In this document: in pieces, positions 37,928 through 54,900 of the stretch
Layout: every line of letters begins with the position of its first letter
Numbering within the stretch: position 1 is the stretch's first letter
NCBI GenBank assembly: GCA_009103225.1
Contig: RHPI01003508.1
Coordinates: 1 to 64,000, forward strand
DNA: 64,000 nucleotides
Direction of reading: 5' to 3'
DNA from: Chlorokybus atmophyticus
Lineage: Eukaryota > Plantae > Mesostigma and Chlorokybus algae
Position numbers and translations under genes: made by a program
Notes under the pieces: generated by a model
Databases searched by the model: none
Seen by the model: only the letters and a program-made list of their open reading frames with translations
What the model was told of the DNA's origin: nothing

Positions 37928-40900
37928 ATGTCGGACTCCAAGTACTTCACAACCACCAAGAAGGGCGAGATTCATGAGCTCAAGCAAGAGCTTAACACGC
38001 CCAATCGGGTATGTGCAATGCTGTGTCAAATGGACGTGCCTTTGCCCAACGGGTGGTTGACACGGGCGGATTGCGGTTGGGCTGCAAACATACACACATT
38101 CATCACCGCGTGCATAGCTGCATGCGTTGCAAATCCGACAATTCGGGGTTACTGTTTTGGACGATTGGTGCGCATCAATGACCATTGCCGCGCAAGATAA
38201 TCACTATGTCATCGTGCTACATTTGCTACGTTTAATCCTAAATCAGCCATGTTGGTCACAATCAGCCACAGTTTTTCGGTGTGGTTTGCATGGCGACTGT
38301 TGTTCAACGCTTATGCCGTGCAACCGACTGTTCAACCGACTGTTGCAAGAATGTTTCATAAGTCACTTCTCCACGCATTAGTCAGCTTCGCCACGTAGGA
38401 GAGGTGCCAGACTTCACCCATGTACACGATGATGCCGAGATGTTGGTTAGTTGTGCGTAGTTGCCTTTCTCTGCTGACTGGCCAATGCAAGGGTTAAATC
38501 GCAGTTTGGTGCACACAAAATTATCAGTTGTGCCATGAGTCGTGCACCTATTGTGTGCGATATGAAGTCGAGCAACACAACTTTGTCTACACATGGGGTA
38601 GTCAACACCAAGTTTCATGGCAGCCCATACTTGACTGTAATACTATGACAGCAAGTATTTACAGGAATAATTGCAATGCAAAGGGAGCTGACTTTATTGG
38701 CTGCGCAGGACAAGAAAAAGGATGCCGTCAAGAAAGTCATTGCAGCCATGACCGTCGGCAAGGATGTGTCCATGTTGTTCACAGATGTAGTGAACTGCAT
38801 GCAAACGGACAACTTGGAGTTGAAGAAGCTGGTGTACTTGTACCTCATCAACTATGCCAAGACACAGCCCGACCTAGCCATACTTGCCGTTAACACCTTT
38901 GTCAAGGTGCGGTTGGTTGACCATGGGGGTTGCTTTGGTGATGGGGCCACATGCATCCACTGTAAAACACAGCACTGAGTAAGTTTCTATTGCCACTAGT
39001 GCCACTAGTGTTGCAGTCCTGGATGGCGCATGCTTTGTAAACCACAGGGCTCAGGATTGCCAATGAACCAGTTTTGCAATGCTGATTTGCGATGGCATCT
39101 ATGTTGTTACCGTTTCAAGTGCGCATAGATGATGGGCCTGGATGCGTATCCATTGAACCACAGCACTTAGTAAATGGCCAGTGTTACAACACTAAGTTGC
39201 AATTGCATCCATGTTGTAACTGTATTCAGTGCCAATGTCATGTCCTGAGTGCGATTGTGCGTCAATATAAGCTCAGCCGCGCACATGCCATTGATGCAAA
39301 CTCCCATTACAACTGCTATTGCAAACAGGACTCCCAAGACCCAAACCCTCTGATCCGAGCTCTGGCTGTGCGTACTATGGGGTGCATTCGAGTGGACAAG
39401 ATTACAGAGTACCTCTGCGACCCATTGCAGCGGTGCTTGAAGGTGACTTGTATCTCTCGCTGCGATGCAGTAGTATGCGAGGTTACGAAAGCCCATTGTC
39501 AAGCCAACACCATTACCTGCATTCTCGCCAGCATGCACTGGCTGATGTTTCTACCATTCGCAGGATGATGATCCGTATGTGCGGAAAACAGCAGCTGTCT
39601 GTGTTGCCAAGCTGTATGACATTAACCCGGAGTTGGTTGAGGACCGTGGCTTCCTCGACACGCTGAAAGACTTGCTGAGCGACAGCAACCCTATGGTCGT
39701 GGCCAATGCAGTTGCATCACTTGCTGAGATCCAGGAGATATCCTCGCATGAGATCTTCCAGATCACCGCCCACACCTTGTTTAAACTCCTGGCGGCTCTC
39801 AATGAGTGCACTGAGTATGTGCTACGTCTTAATTTGCCTAGCAGGAAACCAGATTGCAGATCGATGTTGTGAAACTTCGCAGTACGGTGCTTGAATTTTT
39901 GTTTCACTTCGCAGGTGGGGTCAGGTGTTCATCCTTGACGCTCTTGCTGGATACCAGGCTCGTGATGTCAGAGATGCAGAAAGCATTATCGAGCGTGTTA
40001 CTCCACGTCTTCAGCATGCAAACTGCGCGGTACGCTGTCTAGCGTTGTACTGGACACGCACTTGCATGCCCTAATATCAAATTGCCAAGCCTAACCTTTG
40101 ACTGTGCAGGTGGTTCTGTCCGCCGTCAAGGTTATCATGAAGCAGATGGAGCTGATAAAGAATGACGACATTGTGCGCCAGCTGTGCAAGAAGATGGCAC
40201 CACCACTGGTCACCCTGTTGTCTGCTGAGCCGGAAATCCAGTATGTGGCGTTGCGCAACATCAACTTGATTGTGCAGAAGCGGCCCACAATCCTCAGCCA
40301 TGAAATCAAGGTTTGCATTTGGCTTGAGCTGTGTTGTGCATGATTAGTATTGACCGATAAAGTTCTTGGCCACCAGTGTTGCATGCCAACTTTATCTGCT
40401 TCTGCAGGTGTTTTTCTGTAAATACAATGACCCCATCTACGTGAAAATGGAGAAGCTGGAGATCATGATCATGCTTGCCAATGAAAAGAACATCGACCAG
40501 GTACAGAATGTTGCTGTGTGGCGTTGACATGGTTTGGGTTGTGATTCAGCGGCGCTTAACATAGGTGTTGTATCATACACATCCTAGACTCACTGCATGT
40601 CGTGCAAATGCCAGGTGCTGCTTGAGTTTAAGGAGTATGCAACTGAGGTGGATGTGGACTTTGTGCGTAAAGCTGTACGCGCCATTGGTCGCTGTGCCAT
40701 CAATCTTGATCGGGCAGCAGAACGGTGCATCACTGTGCTGCTCGAGCTCATTCAGACCAAAGTCAACTATGTCGTCCAAGAAGCTATCATTGTTATCAAA
40801 GACATTTTTAGGCGATACCCCAACATGTAAGTGCACCCATGGGCTACTTGCGCTACAATAACCTAGAGCACTGCACCTATGTTTGGTTCTTACAAGCGCC

Positions 40901-42921
40901 TTGACGCTACGTGCAGGTATGAATCGATCATTGCAAACTTGTGCGAGAACCTTGACACATTGGACGAACCTGAGGCCAAGGCGAGTATGATTTGGATTAT
41001 TGGAGAGTATGCTGAGCGTATTGACAATGCAGAGGAGCTTCTTGAACAGTTTCTGGAAACATTCCCCGAGGAGTCTGCACAGGTTTGGGGACTGTCAATA
41101 CTTCACCCTTGTAAACATGTTGCTGAGATTGAAAGCCTGAGGGGGCTAACTCAATCAATTGCTGCAGGTTCAACTACAGCTGCTGACGGCAACAGTCAAG
41201 CTGTTCCTGAAGAAGCCAACTGAGGGCCCGCAAACCATGATACAGGCTGTGCTAAACAATGCAACACAGGAGACGGACAACCCTGATCTTCGCGACCGCG
41301 CGTACGTTTACTGGCGGTTGCTCTCGACAGACCCTGAGGCTGCCAAAGATGTTGTCCTTGCGGAGAAGCCAGTGATATCCGACGATGCCAACCAGCTGGA
41401 TCCCGCTCTACTGGACGAGCTGCTGCGCAACATTGCCACTCTCTCATCAGTGTACCACAAACCTCCGGAGACTTTTGTGAGCCGTACGCGTGCTGCAGTT
41501 ATGCGTGCTGATGAGGTAACAGTCGGAGTGAAGCATTCTGCCAGATTAGTCTTTGTATGCCTGTTACATGAGCCAACCTCTGGATGTTGCAGGTGCACCG
41601 ATCAGTGGACGAGGATGGCTCAGAGGAGGTCTCAGCTCCCATGGAAGGACTGCCTCAGACAGCTGCGCCTCCGGTGTCTGATCCGTTTGGTCTGGGTGCT
41701 GCTCCAGCTCCTGCAGTTGCTCCCAGGTAGAGCACGCATGCACGCGTCATTCAGATGTACAATCATGGCTGGTTGTCATCCTGGTCACCATGAGTAACAG
41801 CCTGCTCAACACGCCGTTGGTCGCAGGGCGGTCGCAGCAGCTGCGCCTGTACCCGATCTGCTCGGCGATCTGTTGTCGCTGGACTTGGGTCAGTCCACTC
41901 CAGCACCGCTGCCTGCATTGCCGCCCGCAGCGTTACCCGCGGCGTCCATGCCTGCCGGCGACTTTGGCATGGGTGACTTTGGCATGATGAGTGCCCCCCC
42001 GCCATCGGTTGCTGCACCGCCAGCCCCAATGGCCATCAGCAAGCCTATCCTTCTCCCTGCCACAAAGGGCCAGGGCCTTGAGATCTCAGGCCAGCTGGCG
42101 CGGGAGGCGGGGCAAATAGTCTACGATCTGACCTTCTCAAACAATAGCTCGACTGTGCTTGATGGATTTATGATTCAACTGAACAAGAACAGCTTTGGCC
42201 TCAGCCCTGCTGGGCCTTTGCAGGTGAACACATCCTTGCTGCAATGGGCACTGCGTGACAGTATGGTGCTGATAGCATTTGTCAAATTGTTGCGACCTAG
42301 GTTCCTCAGGTGCAACCTGGTGGTGTTGCGCATACCAAGCTGCACCTTATTGTAGATGAAGCGAAGGTTGCACCTCCTCCTATAACCGGAATATTGCAGA
42401 TTGCCCTCAAAAACAACCAGCAGCCCGTCTGGTACTTCACAGATACCGTTCATCTGAGCGCCCTGTTTGGGGAAGACGGTGCCATGGACCGCGGTGCATT
42501 TCTCGAAGCTTGGAAGGCTCTGCCCGAGGTTCGTGCACTGCTCTGAGGCTCTCTGCGTTGATGCAGAGCGCATGTTGTAAACATGTGTTGGTCAAGCTGA
42601 TGTTGGATGCCAATGTTTGCTGCTGATGTCTTGCAGGAAGTCGAGCGAACAAGAGACTTTCCCGCCATCCCAATCAGCAGTCTGGACGCGCTGCTTGCAA
42701 AGTTGCAAGCCAGGAACATCTTTTTCATTGCACGCCGAACGCTTAAGGACACGAACCAGGATGTCCTGTACTGCTCACTGAAGTTGCCGCGAAACATCCC
42801 TGTTCTGGTGGAGATCAAGTTCATGCCGGGCATGCCAGGTGTCAGCAGCGCGTGCAAAACGCCCCACCCAGAACTTGCTGACCTGTTCTGGCCAGCACTG
42901 GAGGAAGTCCTCCGCGCATGA
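37928..42921 (+). CDS. AP1B1/AP2B1: AP-1/AP-2 complex beta subunit (beta-adaptin), multi-exon
   Basis: [108 protein letters not shown], hinge [11 protein letters not shown], then ear/appendage exons to the stop at 42921. Confidence 0.97.
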
Positions 42922-44840: not shown

Positions 44841-47800
44841 GTTAATGTCAGCTTTGCACAAAGGCATAGTGTACAAACAATGTAACGCAAAATTGCGCAT
44901 ACATCGTACATATGCATTCGCAAGCTGTGTGTATGCAGTGTACAAAGATTGTGCTACTGCGATGCATTTGCTCTGATGTGTGCGTAATAAATGTGCATGT
45001 ACAAAATTTGCTCATCTGTGAACACATTCATTATATTGATTATATATATATCAAAATTATCAGATGGACTTTTCATGTTTCAATTTTCCCGGGCCGGGGG
45101 GCTGGAGTGATCAAGGACTGAAATTCGACAGCAATGTGCAAGGCGGAGTCTTCATGCGCATGATTCACAGGCAGCTATGACTTGACAAGTTGCTGCTATA
45201 TATGGCATAATTCAGACCGGATCAAGCCAAAAATGGAATAGAACAGCAGCATGGAGCTCACTTTCTATTTATGGCGCGCAATGCATGCGATCATGACCGC
45301 TGCGTTGTTTATCGCGCATGTCGCGCCATGGATGCGAAGATCGCGTCAGCCACAGCGCGCCATACGCGGCAGCTTTGGCTTCTTGCAACCGACGACCAGC
45401 CGACAAGCCATATGACACCCACGCAGTCAATCATGCATGCAGCGTTATGGTTGCGTTGCCGCCAAGCAGAGACAAGTGGACGGCGCGTCACCCCACCCGC
45501 GCATGCCGCCGCGTGACTTCCTTCAGGAAAAGAGGCCTCCGCAATGGAATGGGGACGAATGGGCGTATCCAGCTACGCAGGATTCAGCAGTACAGTGCCG
45601 CGCAGCGTACGTACCAGAGTTAGTTAGCATAACGTAAAAAACCGTTCACTTGTATCAACCATTGAAATCTTGCAGATTTTAGCCTTCAACTGACGAGGAG
45701 CCGACAAAAGGGTTAATGGTTTCAAACACTACCCCAAAGGGGCCCTGACACGACAAGGCTCATGGGGTTGGTGTCCATCCAAGCATGACAAACTGTAACT
45801 GCGTACCGAAGTGCCGGTTTGTAACTTTCGTGATACCTGCACAAGAGTGAAGGTAATTCTTTTAACTTTCATCAATTATACTCGATTAACAAATGGGTGT
45901 ACACATTGACATTATTCATAAATTCTTACATTAATACTAAGATATTTATCATGTGTTTTATGTATGCTTGCAATTTAAAGAGCTGAAGTTATAAGAAACT
46001 GCTTTAATGCGTAAAGTAGTAAGCATGTTAATGTGCAACAACAACCATATGGAATGCATGCTGTGCTGTGTCTAAAGTGCACAATGATGCATACATGCGT
46101 TATTATAATTTGATGGGAAATGTAAATCATTATGCACTAAGTTTGCATAATAGCTACAATACAAGCTCTAATATAACCATATCTTTAGATCTTTACTGCA
46201 ATGCTGTATTATAGTTGCATGCTATTTTCACTTGTAAGCTATGAGTTAACGACTTGTAGGCTATAACATAAGATAAAATGTCTTTTAATGTATTAACGCT
46301 ACAGTAGAATAGATCTATAGAACAAGTTTTGTTTACTCGTAGGGGTGTTACGATGTCAAATGGGCCTGATAACGACTACATGCATGGCGATTGCTGGCAG
46401 CAATTTGCTGCATTTATCACCGCAACATGTATTTACTTACTGTTGTGTACCGGTATGCATGTACACTGAAACACATGGATCATCCGAAATAAGATGTGCG
46501 GACTGCTGTAACATGGATAAACTTGAATAATGGCCCTTGACCTCAACCGCACAGGCCCTGCTTGTCGGTTATACTCAACCAGCGTACCCGCCTGTCAGTC
46601 GACCGCGGGTTATTCACGGTCCATGCATTTTGTTCGTCCTTTGGAAGAGCCAAAGGGGTGTACGTCTCCAGGTCGAATCGGCGTCTGATATGTCGTACCA
46701 CCAGCAGAACCACCGACCATGCGACTTCATGCATGGCGCCAGTTGCGACGCGTGCATTTGGATGCATTCCCACGACAAGACAAGACATTCGTGTCAGCAA
46801 CGCACTTTCCAGCCAATCGCAACGTTATTGTACCGAGCAACGTGCACTCAAGCTTGGCGTGTAGCTGTCACACGTCAAGCCACGCGCGTCCGTACAGTAT
46901 TTGAAAACGATATCAAGCAAGCGTATGTTCACAAAGTAGGTACGTTTCGTAACCCCCTGTGTCCAATAGCGCGCCGAAGTTGGTTCCTCCGCAGGAATCG
47001 CTTTGGTCGGCGGGAGATTCACCAAGTTGCGGCTTAACCGGAACAGTCCAGTGACACGCGAGTCGCAAGCCAGGCAATAGGCGTACTGATGCTGCCCACC
47101 TGTACTCCGTACAGGTGCCTCCCTGGATGCACGACCGGTTCAGCCAACGGCCTCGTCCGGGCATGAAGCCGTACACCTGCAGTAGTACGGGATCCGTTCG
47201 CTTCGGAAAACTTTCCAGAAACGGCAGGCATCTTCAGTACAAACGCATGCATCGCCGCGGGGCGTACGAAAGTGGGTACGCGCGTGGCTCGATCTTGAGG
47301 CGTACAACAAATCTCTGCTCGATCTGGGCGTACGGCTAGCGAGGGAGACACTCAGGCTTTTCCATGATTAATGACACGGTTAAAGTGCGTGTCCATGTGT
47401 GGTGGGGTGGGGGCTGTCATGAACACCATTTGGCCAGGGAGGGGCCACTAGGGCTCTACGTGTACCGGTAGGCCCTAGGGTCAGTGCGCGAGCATATTTG
47501 TCACGTCAACCCTTTCATCATGACAAGTTGTTGGTTCGGTAGGTGTGACCTGCCCACGGTGGCTTGTGTGCTGCTGCTTTGGGCGTGTCATAGATTCCAA
47601 AGGCACGCAAGCAAGAAGTTCATTGCGTACTGCTGTGCTTACTGTTACGGACCTGTACATGTAGCTTGGCTGTGAGCCTCAGAGTATAGTGTACTAGTGT
47701 ACGAGTGAGCAGTTGCCTTGGCGGCGAAGGCATAAGCGGAGGCGGTGGTTGTTGTAAAACGACTCGCTTGGGACAGCTTTCCTTGTCCGTGTGTGGCAGT

Positions 47801-48162
47801 GTGACGTTGACGTGCGTTGCAGCAGCGCAGCTCTGCTTTGCTCGCTGCTGCTGCTTACTGTGGCGGACACAGCTGGTATTGTGGGGGGTGCAGCTGCTGC
47901 CCTCGGAGGCGTGGTGGTTGCCGCTGTGATTGGTGTGACAGGCGGAGGCGTGGTCTGCTGCTGTGAAGGCCGAGCTAGCTGACTGGTGCACCCCTCAGCG
48001 CACCGCTAGCTGTGGTGCGGCCACTTGTAGCCTGTGGAGGCTGTGACCTTGAAGTTTGTTGTGCTGCTACCATCAGTCGCCCTGGAGACCGCCGCCGTCA
48101 CCCCCTCTCTGGCCTCTTTGCTGACGGCGTCCGCAGCGTCGTGTGGCTTGACCACTTCAGAC

Positions 48163-49350
48163 ATGTGGACCAGACCGGGGCCTTCTCAGGCCCAGCATGA
48201 CCTTTTAGCAGGTACAACAGCAAGCTGATGTCGCCCCTGCATGCATGTCTACATTGCTGTCATCATTGTGGTTGTTGCTAACATGGTTATTGACGCCGTC
48301 GTCCGCAGGAGCAGCAGTGCACGCAGGCGAGCCGCAATGTCAGCTGACATGCAGCCGCTGCAGAACTGTGCTGGTTTACCCGCGCGGCGCCTCAAACGTG
48401 CTCTGTGTGCTTTGCAACACCGTTACTGCCGTGCCAGGTGAGCAGTAGCCGCCATTTGCCGCTGCAGCAAGTTCTGTATGGTCATTTGTTTTGCTGACTA
48501 AGCATACTGAGCCACCCTTTCTGTCCAGGTGGCCCACACAGGTTACCTACTTCTAGGCCAGCAGCTGACGCGCCGCAAGCGAAGGTGGCCAAGGTGCAAT
48601 GTGTTGTGCCTCCTGTGAAAGACTACCCTGAGAAGGTCTACAATCAGTCGCCAACGTCGCCTCTGTCGCTTGGTGAGTGCCTTGACTGCATTAGTTTGTT
48701 GTCTCGCTTCAGCTAAGTTGTTGGTGCTGCTCACTTACACGGGTGCATGTATGCTGCAGAGCTGTCCATACAGACCCCACGACTGGACTCTGCCAGAGAC
48801 GCTGTGCATGCAGAAGAGGTGCTCAGAAGCGCTCAAAGTCTCAGCAATGATGCCAATGCTTATGAACGCATGAAGCGCCGCAGGAGGTAACACGCGCTCT
48901 TACTGCAACACAGCAACAGCTCCATGCAGTTTGCCTCGCCATGCACATGCGCTTGCGTGCCCGCACACGCACACACACATTAGCCTGACTTTCACTCTTC
49001 AATGCAGAGAGACTGCTCAGCGCTCAAGAGCTCGCAAAGCTGCTTATATGCGCGCTTTGGAGATTGAGAACGCCACTCTCCGGCAAGACTGCTCCAGCAT
49101 GCGGAAGGAGATTACCCGCCTGCTGAACGAACTTACCGAGGTGTCGCCCGCCACTGCCAGCCACCACATTACAGCTCTGCCCGCATCTCCTCCTCCTCCT
49201 CCTCAACCCCCCTCTGTGGCCCCTGACAGTCCCAAGCCGGAGTCTTCTGATGAGGTGAGCAAGCTTCCTGAGCCCTGACGTGTATTGTGTGCGTTTCATG
49301 GCTGTACCGATCTTGTGTTTTTACTCTGTTCCTGTCCTGCGCAGGCGTAG
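48163..49350 (+). CDS. Fusion of one LSD1-type zinc finger and a bZIP domain
   Basis: Exon at 48310-48436 encodes [22 protein letters not shown] (zf-LSD1 pattern). Downstream exons splice in frame to ERMKRRRR|[39 protein letters not shown] (bZIP). The stop is at 49278 or, with a final intron, 49350. The start codon is tentative. Confidence 0.82.
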
Positions 49351-50404
49351 AGGGCTGCCAGGGCATGACTCGCCTGCGCAAATGTCCAAGTGTAACATTA
49401 TCACATTGAGATATAGTAGCATCTGCAGGTTGATTCAATAACCCCATTGTTAGCAACAGTGTGTGGCCGCCCTGTACATAAGTCGCCGCAGCAGCAGTGT
49501 TTGGATTGTAACTGGAATGGCTGCTTAGGTCGCAGTGGTAGTGAAATCAGACCATAAAGTTTTGTATTTGGCATCGAGAGCTTCTGCATTGCACGTGGGT
49601 GGCTTGTGCAGGAGCTCTGCGAGTAGCATTGCTGTGATTGAAAACCAGTAGTTATAAACCACGCAGGTACATTGTGTATATTGGACAACGGCTGCTGGTT
49701 AACTTACTTGTGTATGCACAGAAAAAACCTCATTGGATATTGTTGAAGTAATTTTACCATGTAGTCCAGATGAATAGGTCTGTGTTCCTCCTTATGTCAT
49801 GCTCGGTAAACAAGGAAATTAATAAATACAACCACAAGCCTAATAAGTTGATGATAGGAATACGGAGTTGCACATTGTGCTGGTAAGTGATTTACAAGAT
49901 GTTTGCGTATCAGTTGTAGGCATGATGAATTATGCAATATGAAAACTACAACACCACGTCATTCATTATTTGATCAATTACAAGTATACACACGACTTGG
50001 TGCTGAAAAGCTGAAGATCATAAACGTAAGCAGTTTTAACGTTCGAGTTTGCTGCTTGACGAATCTGTTCATATTTATATTGAACATTACTATTATGCAT
50101 ATGTTATGTTACCGTCACATGAACATCATCGCTTTATCAATAGCTGAGTAATGCAGTCATTGAAGCAATGTGTGCAGTATATGTGTGTAAGCCTACAAAT
50201 ATAACATTACGCTTATAAGATGCTTCGGCAAAAGTTATGTGGGGCGCTAAAATAAATCATAAAATCATAAAATGGGAAATGTGTATGTACATTTTTTTTT
50301 ACTATAACCACACATTTTGCTAAACTTCATTGTTTAAGTTTGAACTTGAATATGTCTATATACGTGTTACGCCTGCACAAGCGTACATGTGTAATGATAA
50401 GTCT

Positions 50405-50407
50405 CAC

Positions 50408-50474
<67 letters not shown>

Positions 50475-50694
50475 NNNNNNNNNNNNNNNNNNNNNNNNNN
50501 NNNNNNNNNNNNNNNNNNNNNNNNNNNNNNNNNNNNNNNNNNNNNNNNNNNNNNNNNNNNNNNNNNNNNNNNNNNNNNNNNNNNNNNNNNNNNNNNNNNN
50601 NNNNNNNNNNNNNNNNNNNNNNNNNNNNNNNNNNNNNNNNNNNNNNNNNNNNNNNNNNNNNNNNNNNNNNNNNNNNNNNNNNNNNNNNNNNNNN

Positions 50695-50736
<42 letters not shown>
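50405..50736. repeat. (CA)n microsatellite spanning an assembly gap (N 50475-50694)
   Basis: CA repeats on both sides of the N run. Confidence 0.95.
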
Positions 50737-50740
<4 letters not shown>

Positions 50741-51601
50741 TTCTCTAAAGTAACGGGTGCTACTGGGGCCCCTACAATATGGGCGCATTATGTAAAGACT
50801 CTAATTCATGCACGTAAATAGTGTGTGATGGGCATGGAGAAACCGCAATCTCATTGAGTATTGATTCATGTAAACTCTGCATCAATCTTATCAACTCAGA
50901 TTTGCAGGTAAATCTTTCAACTCGCCTTTGAGAGTAGACTAGCTCGAGTCAGTAAGATCTCATATCCGCGTATGCAATGTAAAAACATAAATAAAAACAC
51001 ACACATTACACAATTTATGAAAAGTATGCACATCTGCGTTATTAATAAAACGACGGGCAAAGTATTGCCAGAATCAAGCGTAACAATTGGGTCCACATCA
51101 ACAGTTGTGATGTTATCATGATTCATGCAACATGCCATGTTAGGATAAGTTTAGCGTGTTGCACTATCGCAGCTGCAATGAGTAAGTGAATTGTTATCAT
51201 AATTGAAAAACATGTTACTATTGTCTATGGTTTGCTATATGGGAAGCTTAAAGCCAATTGCGAATTCTCATGCGCCAGGCGGGGTTTTGTGTGGGTGATA
51301 TGTGTACAAATCGCACTGCCATGGGTTCGTTGCAAAGATTGCCGTAGTGCACCAGCACCAGTACATGGCGTGATTATATCATAGGCTATTTCCACAATGG
51401 TACATGTAGCAATTACATAGCTGTAGCACATGTGTCTCATGCCGACGGAATGTAACCATGCACATGTTACTCAGGGTAATCTTCTTCAAACGGTGTTGCA
51501 TGTACTTTTAGAAAAACAACAACGACGATGCTTTTGTTTGTTGATCCTCAACATGACATTGAAGTTGTACTAGTAAGCACAACCTCATGATGACCCCCCC
51601 C

Positions 51602-51868
51602 NNNNNNNNNNNNNNNNNNNNNNNNNNNNNNNNNNNNNNNNNNNNNNNNNNNNNNNNNNNNNNNNNNNNNNNNNNNNNNNNNNNNNNNNNNNNNNNNNNN
51701 NNNNNNNNNNNNNNNNNNNNNNNNNNNNNNNNNNNNNNNNNNNNNNNNNNNNNNNNNNNNNNNNNNNNNNNNNNNNNNNNNNNNNNNNNNNNNNNNNNNN
51801 NNNNNNNNNNNNNNNNNNNNNNNNNNNNNNNNNNNNNNNNNNNNNNNNNNNNNNNNNNNNNNNNNNNN
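51602..51868. other. Assembly gap (N run) bordered by C runs
   Basis: Uninterrupted Ns. Confidence 0.99.
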
Positions 51869-51900
51869 CCACAGGCAAGGCAGTCATACTACCTTCTCCC

Positions 51901-54900
51901 TCACCCCTCCGCTTTCCTTCTTATCCTCTCCACATACTCTTCCACACTCTCCACCCTCTCCACCCCTCCCCTCCTCACCGCATAAACCCTCCCCCCCTCC
52001 CCCTCTCCCTCCCCTTCCCCTTCTCCCTCCCCCGCCACACTCTCGATGAGGTGCTGGTCGTGCGACACCACCACGAGGGCGCCGGGGTACTGCGATAAAG
52101 CGGAGATGAGGGCGGACACGGACGCGAGGTCGAGGTGGTTGGAGGGCTCGTCCAGGAGGAGGAGGTGGGGACGGGGGAAAACTGCACGAGGGTGGGTGAG
52201 TGGGTGTGTGCGCGTGAGCACTTGCACGTGCATGCGTGTGCTAGTGATCCCAGTTGACGCGAAGACTTGAAACTCAACACTTATGCGCATGCAGACACTA
52301 CTTCTTACTTACACTCACACGAGTCATAGCAGTACATACCTGTAGCAGCCAAAGCTACACGCACAGCTTGGCCTCCAGACAGGGTGTCCAACCTTTGGAC
52401 TGCACACACAGGCACCGATACAGTCACAAAATGGTATGCGACAATTCTCATTGTACCAACAATAGTCATGTTGAACCTGCCGGTAGTAACAGCCCTATGT
52501 TATCACGTACCTGCCAGGGGTCCCTTAATGCCAAACGACCCCAGGTGAGCCCTCATCTCCTGCTCCTTAACGCCTGGGAACAGACTCATCAGATGCGACA
52601 GCGCCGTCTTACTGCTGCTGTTACCACAATCTACACCACCCTTTGCCAACTGGTCTACATGGTGCTGCATGAAGTAGCCTACGCGCGCCTGCACGGATGT
52701 AAGAAGGAGACAAGAATCCTTGAGTAATTGGTTCATGGAGTTGCCCAGTTGCATGTTAACCCAACATATTTCCTTCTTCTTCTTGCCTGGGAGTGGTGGG
52801 TCACAGTGCCTGAAGTGGGTTTCAGTTCTCCGGCCAGCAGCTTCATCAGCGTGGTTTTGCCGCTCCCGTTTGCCCCGATGATCGCCACTCTGGAGTTACG
52901 TGTGTATGTGCATGTGCATGTGTGTGAACAGCGGCTAACAACACGACGCTTTGAATATATGAAGCAGATATTGCAGTGTAACACAGTCAACGTCAATGTC
53001 AATATTGAGCTCACTTTGCGCCCTCGTCAATGCGCATCGTCACACCCTTCAACACAGCCTGCTTGCCACAGAGCTCGTTGTGAGATGCCGTGTCATTGCT
53101 CACTGCTAGTAGGTGTCTCACTCAATGTAAGGTTGAGTGAATGAAACAGCGGATGAGTCCCTTGATCAGGACTTGATAGTTAAGCATTTGTCACGGGTCT
53201 GATGCACGTGCGCACGCGTGCATCAGACCAGTGCGTGTGCGTGTGCGTGTGCGTGTGCGTGTGCGTGTGCGTGTGCGCGCGTGTATGTATGTGTATATAT
53301 GTGTGTACACGCGCGCACACGTGGGCACACAGGCACACACGACCATGCATACGCATGCGCGTGCATATACACATACATGCGTGCACATGCATGCGTGCAC
53401 GCACGCACACACTCCCTTCCCCACCCCACGCACCCCACGCACCCCACGCACACCCCCCCTCACCTTGCCCCCTCCCGCGTACGTGTACCCCGCGCCCTCC
53501 ACCTCCACGATCGCGGTCCCCCCCCGCCTGAGCTCCTCGGGGGCCGCGAACGCGAACTTCACGACGGGGTCGGAGGACTCCACCTCGATCTCGGCGCGGG
53601 AGGAGTTGTGGTAGCCGGGACGGTCCTTTTATGTGATGAAGCAGTGAGCGAGTGAATGGGTGAGTGAGTGAAAGAGCACAAGAGCGCATGCATGTGCACA
53701 CCCGCGCGCGCGCGCGCATACACGCACATGCGCAGCCAGTTGCATGCGCATTCGCACGCACATATCCTGTCACCCGCAAACACGAACACACACGCCCACG
53801 CCCACGCACGCACATGCACCCCAACACCCACCCACCCACCCACCCCAACTCACTCTATTCAGCTTGAACTTGTGCCCCTTCTCGTTCCGCTCCATCCCCA
53901 GCCTCTCCAGCTTCTTCTTCCTGGACGCCACCATGCCGAGGCGGTTGTCGTCGCCGCTCTGGCGGGCGGCTTTGGTGCCCTCCGCGATCGACTTCTGGAT
54001 GTGGGCCCTGCAGCAGGAAAGGGAAGAAGACGAAGAGAGAGTTTGCTGCCGACAACCCAATTGAACTGAGATGATACTGACACATACATGCGTGGGCCAG
54101 TGTGCGCATGCGAGCACACGCGCATGTGTGCGCAAGTGCATGTGCTTGCGTGCGGGTGCGTGCGTGTAGATACACACAAACACAACACATCTGGGCACAT
54201 GCGCTCGCTCGCACGCACGCACGCGCACACGCGCACGCGCACGCCTCCCCCCTCCCCCCTTCCCCCCCTTCCCCCCCCTCACCTCTTCCTGTCATCATTC
54301 TCCTTCATCCTCCCCATACACCTCCTCTTCTCCTCCCTCTCCTTCTCATACTCCTCATAGTTCCCCGCATGGTACTCCAGCCCCTTCTCCCTCAGCACCA
54401 CGATCTCCTCCGCGACAGCGTTGAGGAAAGAGCGGTCGTGAGAGACCGTGACAACAGTACTCTCCAAGGATTGGAGGTAGGACTCCAGCCAGATGATGGC
54501 GGGGAGGTCCAGGTGGTTGGTCGGCTCGTCCAGGAGGAGGATGTCGGGGGGGTGGAAGAGGGCACGGGCTAAGGCGACGCGGAGGCGCCAGCCGCCTGAG
54601 GGGAGGGTGGGTGGGTGTGGGAGTGGGAGTGGGTGGGGGTGTGGGTGTGGGACACAGGAGCAGGTACATGCACAGGTGCTCAACTGATCGTTGCACAGCC
54701 ACGCACATGCATACGTTGACGTGTTAGTACGAGCAAGGATGCGTGCACGCACGCGCAGCGCGTGTGCGTGCACGCCCCCGCACACACTATAACCTAACCT
54801 GCTCACACACGCACGCACACGCGCTCGTACACCCACCTGACAACTGTGCCAGCGTGGAGTCCTGTTTCACCAGCCCGAACCCCAGTCCCTTCAGGATCCG

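Follow-up and report, generated by a model that had tools for sequence, protein, structure and literature searches.

Chrsp88S08056 of the alga Chlorokybus atmophyticus encodes an LSD1-type zinc finger and a divergent bZIP-type domain in a single polypeptide. The combination is apparently undescribed, and the finger and bZIP families themselves are known. In the literature searched, neither zf-LSD1 with bZIP in one protein nor LSD1 fingers in Chlorokybus are described, and the gene is unnamed. We favor the reading that Chrsp88S08056 is a DNA-binding factor with a regulatory finger and put its probability at roughly 60%.

A spliced and expressed gene

The gene has six exons on the plus strand of the window, by which we mean the whole 64-kb stretch of DNA that was analyzed. 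Its coding sequence runs from 48163 to 49350 and comprises 702 nt, which encode 233 amino acids (frame assembled by script from 47400–50400). The limits given by the first-pass annotation coincide exactly with the initiation codon (ATG) and the termination codon (TAG). The lengths of introns 1 to 5 are 97, 91, 87, 121 and 90 nt, and each intron has GT..AG borders. Exon 1 supplies the first 16 codons and one further nucleotide (48163–48211), exon 2 contains the entire zinc finger (48309–48437), and exon 3 encodes a linker that is predicted to be disordered (48529–48672). Exon 4 encodes the start of a long helix and the first half of the basic region (48760–48886). Exon 5 (49008–49254) completes the basic region and adds the zipper and a proline-rich tail. 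Exon 6 (49345–49719) begins with the last codon and the stop TAG at 49348–49350 (coding part 49345–49350) and continues into a 3′ UTR of approximately 369 nt. All exons were placed by the reading frame and by transcript contigs, together with Pfam for exons 2 and 5 and AF2 for exons 3 and 4.

The spliced model is identical, residue for residue, to a public C. atmophyticus protein (P0001; EukProt EP00898, JGI Chlat1 8674, Chrsp88S08056). This 233-amino acid protein was also retrieved at 100% identity when 1.84 billion representatives were searched exhaustively by phmmer with exon 5 as the query. Its precomputed public annotation is PF06943 alone because the bZIP part scores under the Pfam cutoff.

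The stretch is present in four sequencing runs from two studies, and the runs were assumed, by guess, to be RNA. Run X1 (study P1, 2013) yielded a single 1464-nt contig on 47770–49719, and run X2 (study P2, 2021) yielded a single 1361-nt contig on 47844–49690. Both contigs match the genomic sequence with 100% identity, and all five introns are absent from each. When the contigs were aligned to 46500–50300, their splice borders were the predicted GT..AG borders. Since the contigs contain both UTRs and lack every intron, they are derived from spliced mRNA. The transcribed region on the plus strand is 47770–49719, and the mRNA is 1464 nt once spliced.

The first-pass annotation had placed both domains in one spliced frame and one polypeptide, and the X1 and X2 contigs, which bridge all six exons, bear this out. 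As judged from the same contigs, the two domains are not on separate transcripts and the bZIP exons are expressed. Clearly, the finger and the bZIP-like domain are encoded on one spliced, expressed mRNA. That the fused gene is real is close to certain.

The 5′ UTR (47770–48162, plus strand, 393 nt) has an in-frame stop at 48028. It contains no ATG in any frame and thus no uORF, and the first ATG of the mRNA is the one at 48163. Because the leader lacks an ATG and has an in-frame stop, the Chrsp88S08056 ORF is complete. In land plants, the mRNAs of group S bZIPs carry conserved regulatory uORFs.

Run X2 also contains a 100-nt contig that lies wholly within intron 1 (48212–48280). Its depth is 5, compared with 1830 for the mature form (about 0.3%). 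This contig doubles back over 69 nt (from 48280 back to 48212, plus an additional T) and could stem from pre-mRNA or from a fault of assembly.

The sequence directly 3′ of the fusion gene (49750–52000) includes extended (CA)n/(GT)n microsatellites as well as two N runs (approximately 50470–50700 and 51600–51880). Its GC content is 0.31 (50001–52000 bin) versus about 0.5 elsewhere. Exons of an ABC ATPase, probably of the ABC-F type, are found on the minus strand at 51900–54836 (ABC_tran, E 4.5e-7, then a weak ABC_tran_Xtn match), and the introns or flanks of this gene are dense in CA/GT and GA-rich simple repeats. On the other side of the fusion gene, exons of a beta-adaptin-like gene occupy 40879–42355 on the plus strand (Adaptin_N, E 1.8e-10 on the ORF at 41159–41794).

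The LSD1-type finger and the linker

The zf-LSD1 domain spans amino acids 31–55 (48350–48424, plus strand) and has four cysteines, an arginine after the second cysteine, YP, GA and a valine. The 22-residue core (amino acids 31–52, 48350–48415) retains all positions of the consensus CxxCRxxLxYPxGAxxVxCxxC. PF06943 was matched over positions 1–25 of its 25 positions, with 39.3 bits on exon 2 alone (E 6e-10) and 35.8 bits on the whole protein, where the cutoff is 20.2. With four cysteines, the full consensus and a Pfam score well over the cutoff, the finger is as canonical as had been claimed for it. It is the only LSD1-type finger that a six-frame scan detected in the 64-kb window. At 25 residues, it is too short to be assigned to an LSD1 orthologue as opposed to LOL or metacaspase fingers.

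AF2, run on the single sequence, predicted four short strands at amino acids 27–57 with a pLDDT of about 70–76. Foldseek returned zinc ribbons as weak matches only, none better than E 0.3. Among the PDB matches obtained by sequence and by fold there were weak zinc ribbons (eS27 and RBR RING2, for example), and a solved LSD1 finger was not among them.

Exon 2 is 129 nt long and is in phase 1 at both ends. Because the finger is complete in this one exon and the phases agree, its insertion in one piece would have left the frame intact. From this arrangement we infer that the finger exon may have originated by exon shuffling.

The finger resembles those of the Arabidopsis LSD1/LOL proteins in its CxxCRxxLxYPxGAxxVxCxxC sequence, and it is likely to be a protein-interaction or nuclear-import module. 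LSD1/LOL proteins, however, lack a DNA-binding domain and carry two or three fingers in tandem, whereas the Chlorokybus protein has one finger and then a bZIP-type helix. The single finger and the bZIP-like domain that follows it rule out membership in the LSD1/LOL family. Type I metacaspases, for example AtMC1, also place one N-terminal LSD1-type finger before an unrelated effector domain and set the precedent for regarding such a finger as a regulatory module that can move between proteins. Their effector is a C14 peptidase, whereas that of the Chlorokybus protein is a bZIP-like helix. A type I metacaspase was rejected since no Peptidase_C14 match was obtained, even at E up to 10.

Between the finger and the bZIP-type domain, AF2 predicted a disordered linker of approximately 55 residues (amino acids 61–116). 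The Pro/Ser-rich C-terminal tail (amino acids 197–233, 49147–49347, plus strand) is likewise predicted to be disordered. The linker contains LSLEL, an EAR-like LxLxL motif at amino acids 105–109 (48663–48764, plus strand) that is split by intron 3 across the exon 3/4 junction. By chance, 0.12 LxLxL motifs would be expected in a protein of such composition (about 1 of 8 proteins), so LSLEL alone is weak evidence. EAR-motif repressors are characterized by a conserved LxLxL to which TOPLESS-type corepressors bind.

A divergent bZIP-type domain and its Chlorella relative

The basic region and zipper span amino acids 145–195. The basic region comprises 22 residues (amino acids 145–166, 48870–49056, plus strand) and is followed by a leucine zipper (49057–49143, plus strand) of four to five heptads with L167, L174, M181, L188 and V195 at the d positions. 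The zipper stops at Pro197. AF2 predicted one continuous helix over amino acids 119–195 with pLDDT of 84–98. Asn171 occupies an a position of the zipper, and there are two attractive g–e′ pairs (E170–R175 and D177–R182). By the usual coiled-coil rules, an asparagine at an a position and attractive g–e′ pairs are compatible with homodimers.

PF00170 (bZIP_1) matched amino acids 143–191 of the whole protein with 22.7 bits (E 1e-4), below the cutoff of 27.6. Exon 5 alone gave 24.9 bits (E 2.2e-5), which is still under the cutoff. The score for bZIP_2 (PF07716) was 11.9–14.8 bits against a cutoff of 22.3, and bZIP_Maf was a further weak match. A PDB profile search with the bZIP region and its relative found BACH1, TGA7, ATF-2, GCN4, VBP and CREB at E 0.003–0.9, interspersed with plain coiled coils such as CENP-P. 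In the matches to TGA7, GCN4, ATF-2, BACH1 and CREB, the basic region was aligned in register. When the ESM Atlas was queried with the whole protein, 10/10 of the best feature neighbors were bZIP clusters, with low scores of 0.76–0.78.

The signature of the basic region is in register with L167. Ala153 is at −14, Ser156 at −11, Arg157 at −10 and Arg159-Lys160 at −8/−7, so the AxxSRxRK core is retained in the zipper register and Arg157 provides the Arg/Lys at −10. The exception is position −18, which is normally asparagine. It is occupied by Arg149, which HMMER alignments place opposite the asparagine of GCN4 and TGA7, and the sequence departs here from the N-x7-R/K rule. As judged from the sequence, amino acids 145–195 are a divergent bZIP-type domain that is non-canonical by curated thresholds. 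The earlier description of a bZIP basic region with zipper is upheld by the register, the heptads and the helix; the domain is divergent in its PF00170 score, which is below the cutoff, and in the Asn-to-Arg change at −18.

Intron 4 (48886/49008) interrupts the basic region inside the Arg150 codon, one residue past −18. Land-plant bZIP groups have conserved intron positions in the basic motif (PMC2492810, Figure S2).

The exhaustive phmmer search, for which exon 5 only was the query, found one true relative cluster at E 0.001 or better. It is represented by a 314-amino acid protein from a Logan transcript contig (P0004, locus L001:63-1007), whose 90% cluster includes a 509-amino acid protein of Chlorella sp. 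A99 (P0007, scaffold9.g3155.t1). The bZIP part is 39% identical to the Chlorella relative over 81 aligned residues and 46% identical over the 65 residues matched by phmmer. The pattern ER.K.RRRE.AQRSR.RK..YMR.LEIEN (also KKRRRESAQRSRxRK..YMRSLEIEN) is common to Chlorokybus and both sequences, the Asn-to-Arg change included. On P0004 and P0007, bZIP_2 scored 20.9–23.0 bits against the cutoff of 22.3, with P0004 just over it at 23.0. The Chlorella protein is the only detectable relative of the bZIP part and shares its Asn-to-Arg basic region and YMRxLEIEN hinge. It differs in its length (314–509 amino acids), in a long Ala/Gln-rich N-terminus and in the absence of the finger, as a Pfam scan found no LSD1 finger in P0004 or P0007. 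The common substitution and hinge suggest a little-studied green-algal bZIP subtype that is barely caught by curated profiles.

DNA binding is not assured, as the bZIP part is under the Pfam cutoff and the signature asparagine is missing. The C-terminal helix might no longer be a DNA-binding bZIP but a basic coiled-coil element for dimerization or nuclear localization. In that case, the protein would act either as a dimeric, LSD1-like scaffold or as a dominant-negative partner titrating true bZIPs. Such a loss would fit the bZIP_1 score of 22.7 bits against 27.6, the arginine in place of the base-contacting asparagine at −18, and the weak PDB matches with plain coiled coils among them. However, the other basic-region positions, from Ala at −14 to Arg-Lys at −8/−7, are in exact register. 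Furthermore, the Asn-to-Arg variant is kept across the streptophyte/chlorophyte split, in Chlorokybus and in Chlorella, which suggests selection on the basic region. [quoted passage not shown] 2008, PMC2492810). The asparagine is therefore not absolute for the bZIP family. Group L differs from the Chlorokybus protein in that its basic motif is five residues shorter. Taken with these points, loss of DNA binding appears plausible but rather unlikely.

Origin and possible function

No other fusion of a finger with a bZIP was found in word-index, metagenome and Atlas searches, all of which are of limited reach. Word-index protein searches with the full protein, the finger (amino acids 18–62) and the bZIP (amino acids 128–196) recovered nothing beyond the query protein (1378, 2 and 5 candidates were considered, in that order); such searches are too insensitive for domains this short, and their blanks do not show absence. 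JGI metagenome scans with the bZIP alignment and with the whole protein gave no confirmed match. The ESM Atlas, queried with the N-terminal half and with the whole protein minus bZIP families, gave nothing usable.

Because the Chlorella bZIP relative is without a finger, a late domain gain is favored over an ancestral fused state. The suggestion of the first-pass annotation that the fusion could be ancestral is disfavored by this sole detectable relative. Lineage-restricted domain shuffling is the most likely origin of the architecture, and in the simplest history a green-algal Asn-to-Arg bZIP would have acquired the finger exon on the branch leading to Chlorokybus.

Under the favored reading, Chrsp88S08056 would be a modular transcription regulator of five parts: an N-terminal LSD1-type zinc ribbon, a disordered linker with LxLxL, a divergent basic region, a short zipper and a proline-rich tail. 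The protein would dimerize through its zipper, and homodimers are compatible with the two attractive g–e′ pairs and the asparagine at an a position. Since arginine replaces the base-contacting asparagine at −18, the half-site preference in DNA binding may be shifted away from the ACGT-core norm. Repression might occur through the LSLEL motif. In pea, the LSD1 fingers are a nuclear localization signal and bind importin α (PMC3139611). By analogy with the fingers of land-plant LSD1, from which all of these functions are carried over, the Chlorokybus finger could dock proteins (LSD1-type fingers, importin α or similar) or serve nuclear import. The finger would thereby set the location, partners or activity of the factor.

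Group C bZIPs have a long zipper of up to about nine heptads. The Chlorokybus protein is similar to Arabidopsis bZIP10, a member of group C, in having a basic region and a leucine zipper and in the logic of an LSD1 finger tied to a bZIP. It differs from bZIP10 in its short zipper, in arginine rather than asparagine at −18, and in the bZIP_C domain, for which Pfam gave no match to the Chrsp88S08056 protein at E up to 10. Without bZIP_C, and with a zipper that ends at Pro197 after four to five heptads, the protein was rejected as a group C (bZIP10-type) member. LSD1 and bZIP10 of Arabidopsis associate in trans, whereas the Chlorokybus finger and bZIP are in one polypeptide. The likeness to LSD1–bZIP10 would be one of working logic rather than of demonstrated descent.

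The fusion could also be read as a Rosetta stone, as the first-pass annotation proposed. It would preserve, or independently record, an ancient functional partnership of LSD1-type fingers with a proto-C bZIP for the control of oxidative stress and cell death, and the finger would check its own bZIP in cis. The fusion is indeed real and expressed. In Arabidopsis, moreover, it is established that LSD1 binds bZIP10 and retains it outside the nucleus, in the cytoplasm, until a ROS-derived signal frees it (PMC4311611). Several results argue against this reading: bZIP_C is absent and the zipper is limited to four to five heptads, the sole detectable bZIP relative is fingerless, the fusion was not found elsewhere in what were weak searches, and the finger offers too little sequence to be attributed to an LSD1 orthologue. 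The AF2 model has no cis contact, and a model with a disordered linker is uninformative on intramolecular control. Overall, the Rosetta-stone reading is doubtful. It is equally doubtful that the first streptophytes already had LSD1-type fingers working together with a stress-responsive bZIP and that Chlorokybus retains the two in covalent linkage, with the finger gating nuclear entry or DNA binding in cis.

An artefact, in which gene prediction, transcriptional read-through or a chimeric assembly joined two adjacent genes, is extremely improbable, as no support for it was found beyond the one oddity of the low-depth 100-nt X2 contig in intron 1, whereas identical spliced contigs of high word depth come from two studies, one unbroken ORF extends from the first ATG of the mRNA, exons 3–4 join both domains in frame, and neither internal polyadenylation nor a second start is required.

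Because the public annotation of Chrsp88S08056 is PF06943 alone, family censuses probably list it among "LSD" proteins and overlook its DNA-binding half. The green-algal bZIP subtype with the Asn-to-Arg change possibly has different target sites. If the Rosetta-stone reading were true after all, a simple alga would allow the origin and mechanism of the plant LSD1–bZIP10 cell-death rheostat to be tested directly. As portable regulatory modules, LSD1-type fingers are known from LSD1/LOL proteins and from type I metacaspases, both of which act in plant cell-death control. A direct fusion to a bZIP-type DNA-binding domain would be a third setting and would show that recruitment of the finger to different effectors was already under way in a streptophyte lineage that is among the earliest to diverge. 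The fusion offers a one-protein system for asking whether the role of the finger is import, retention or partner docking.
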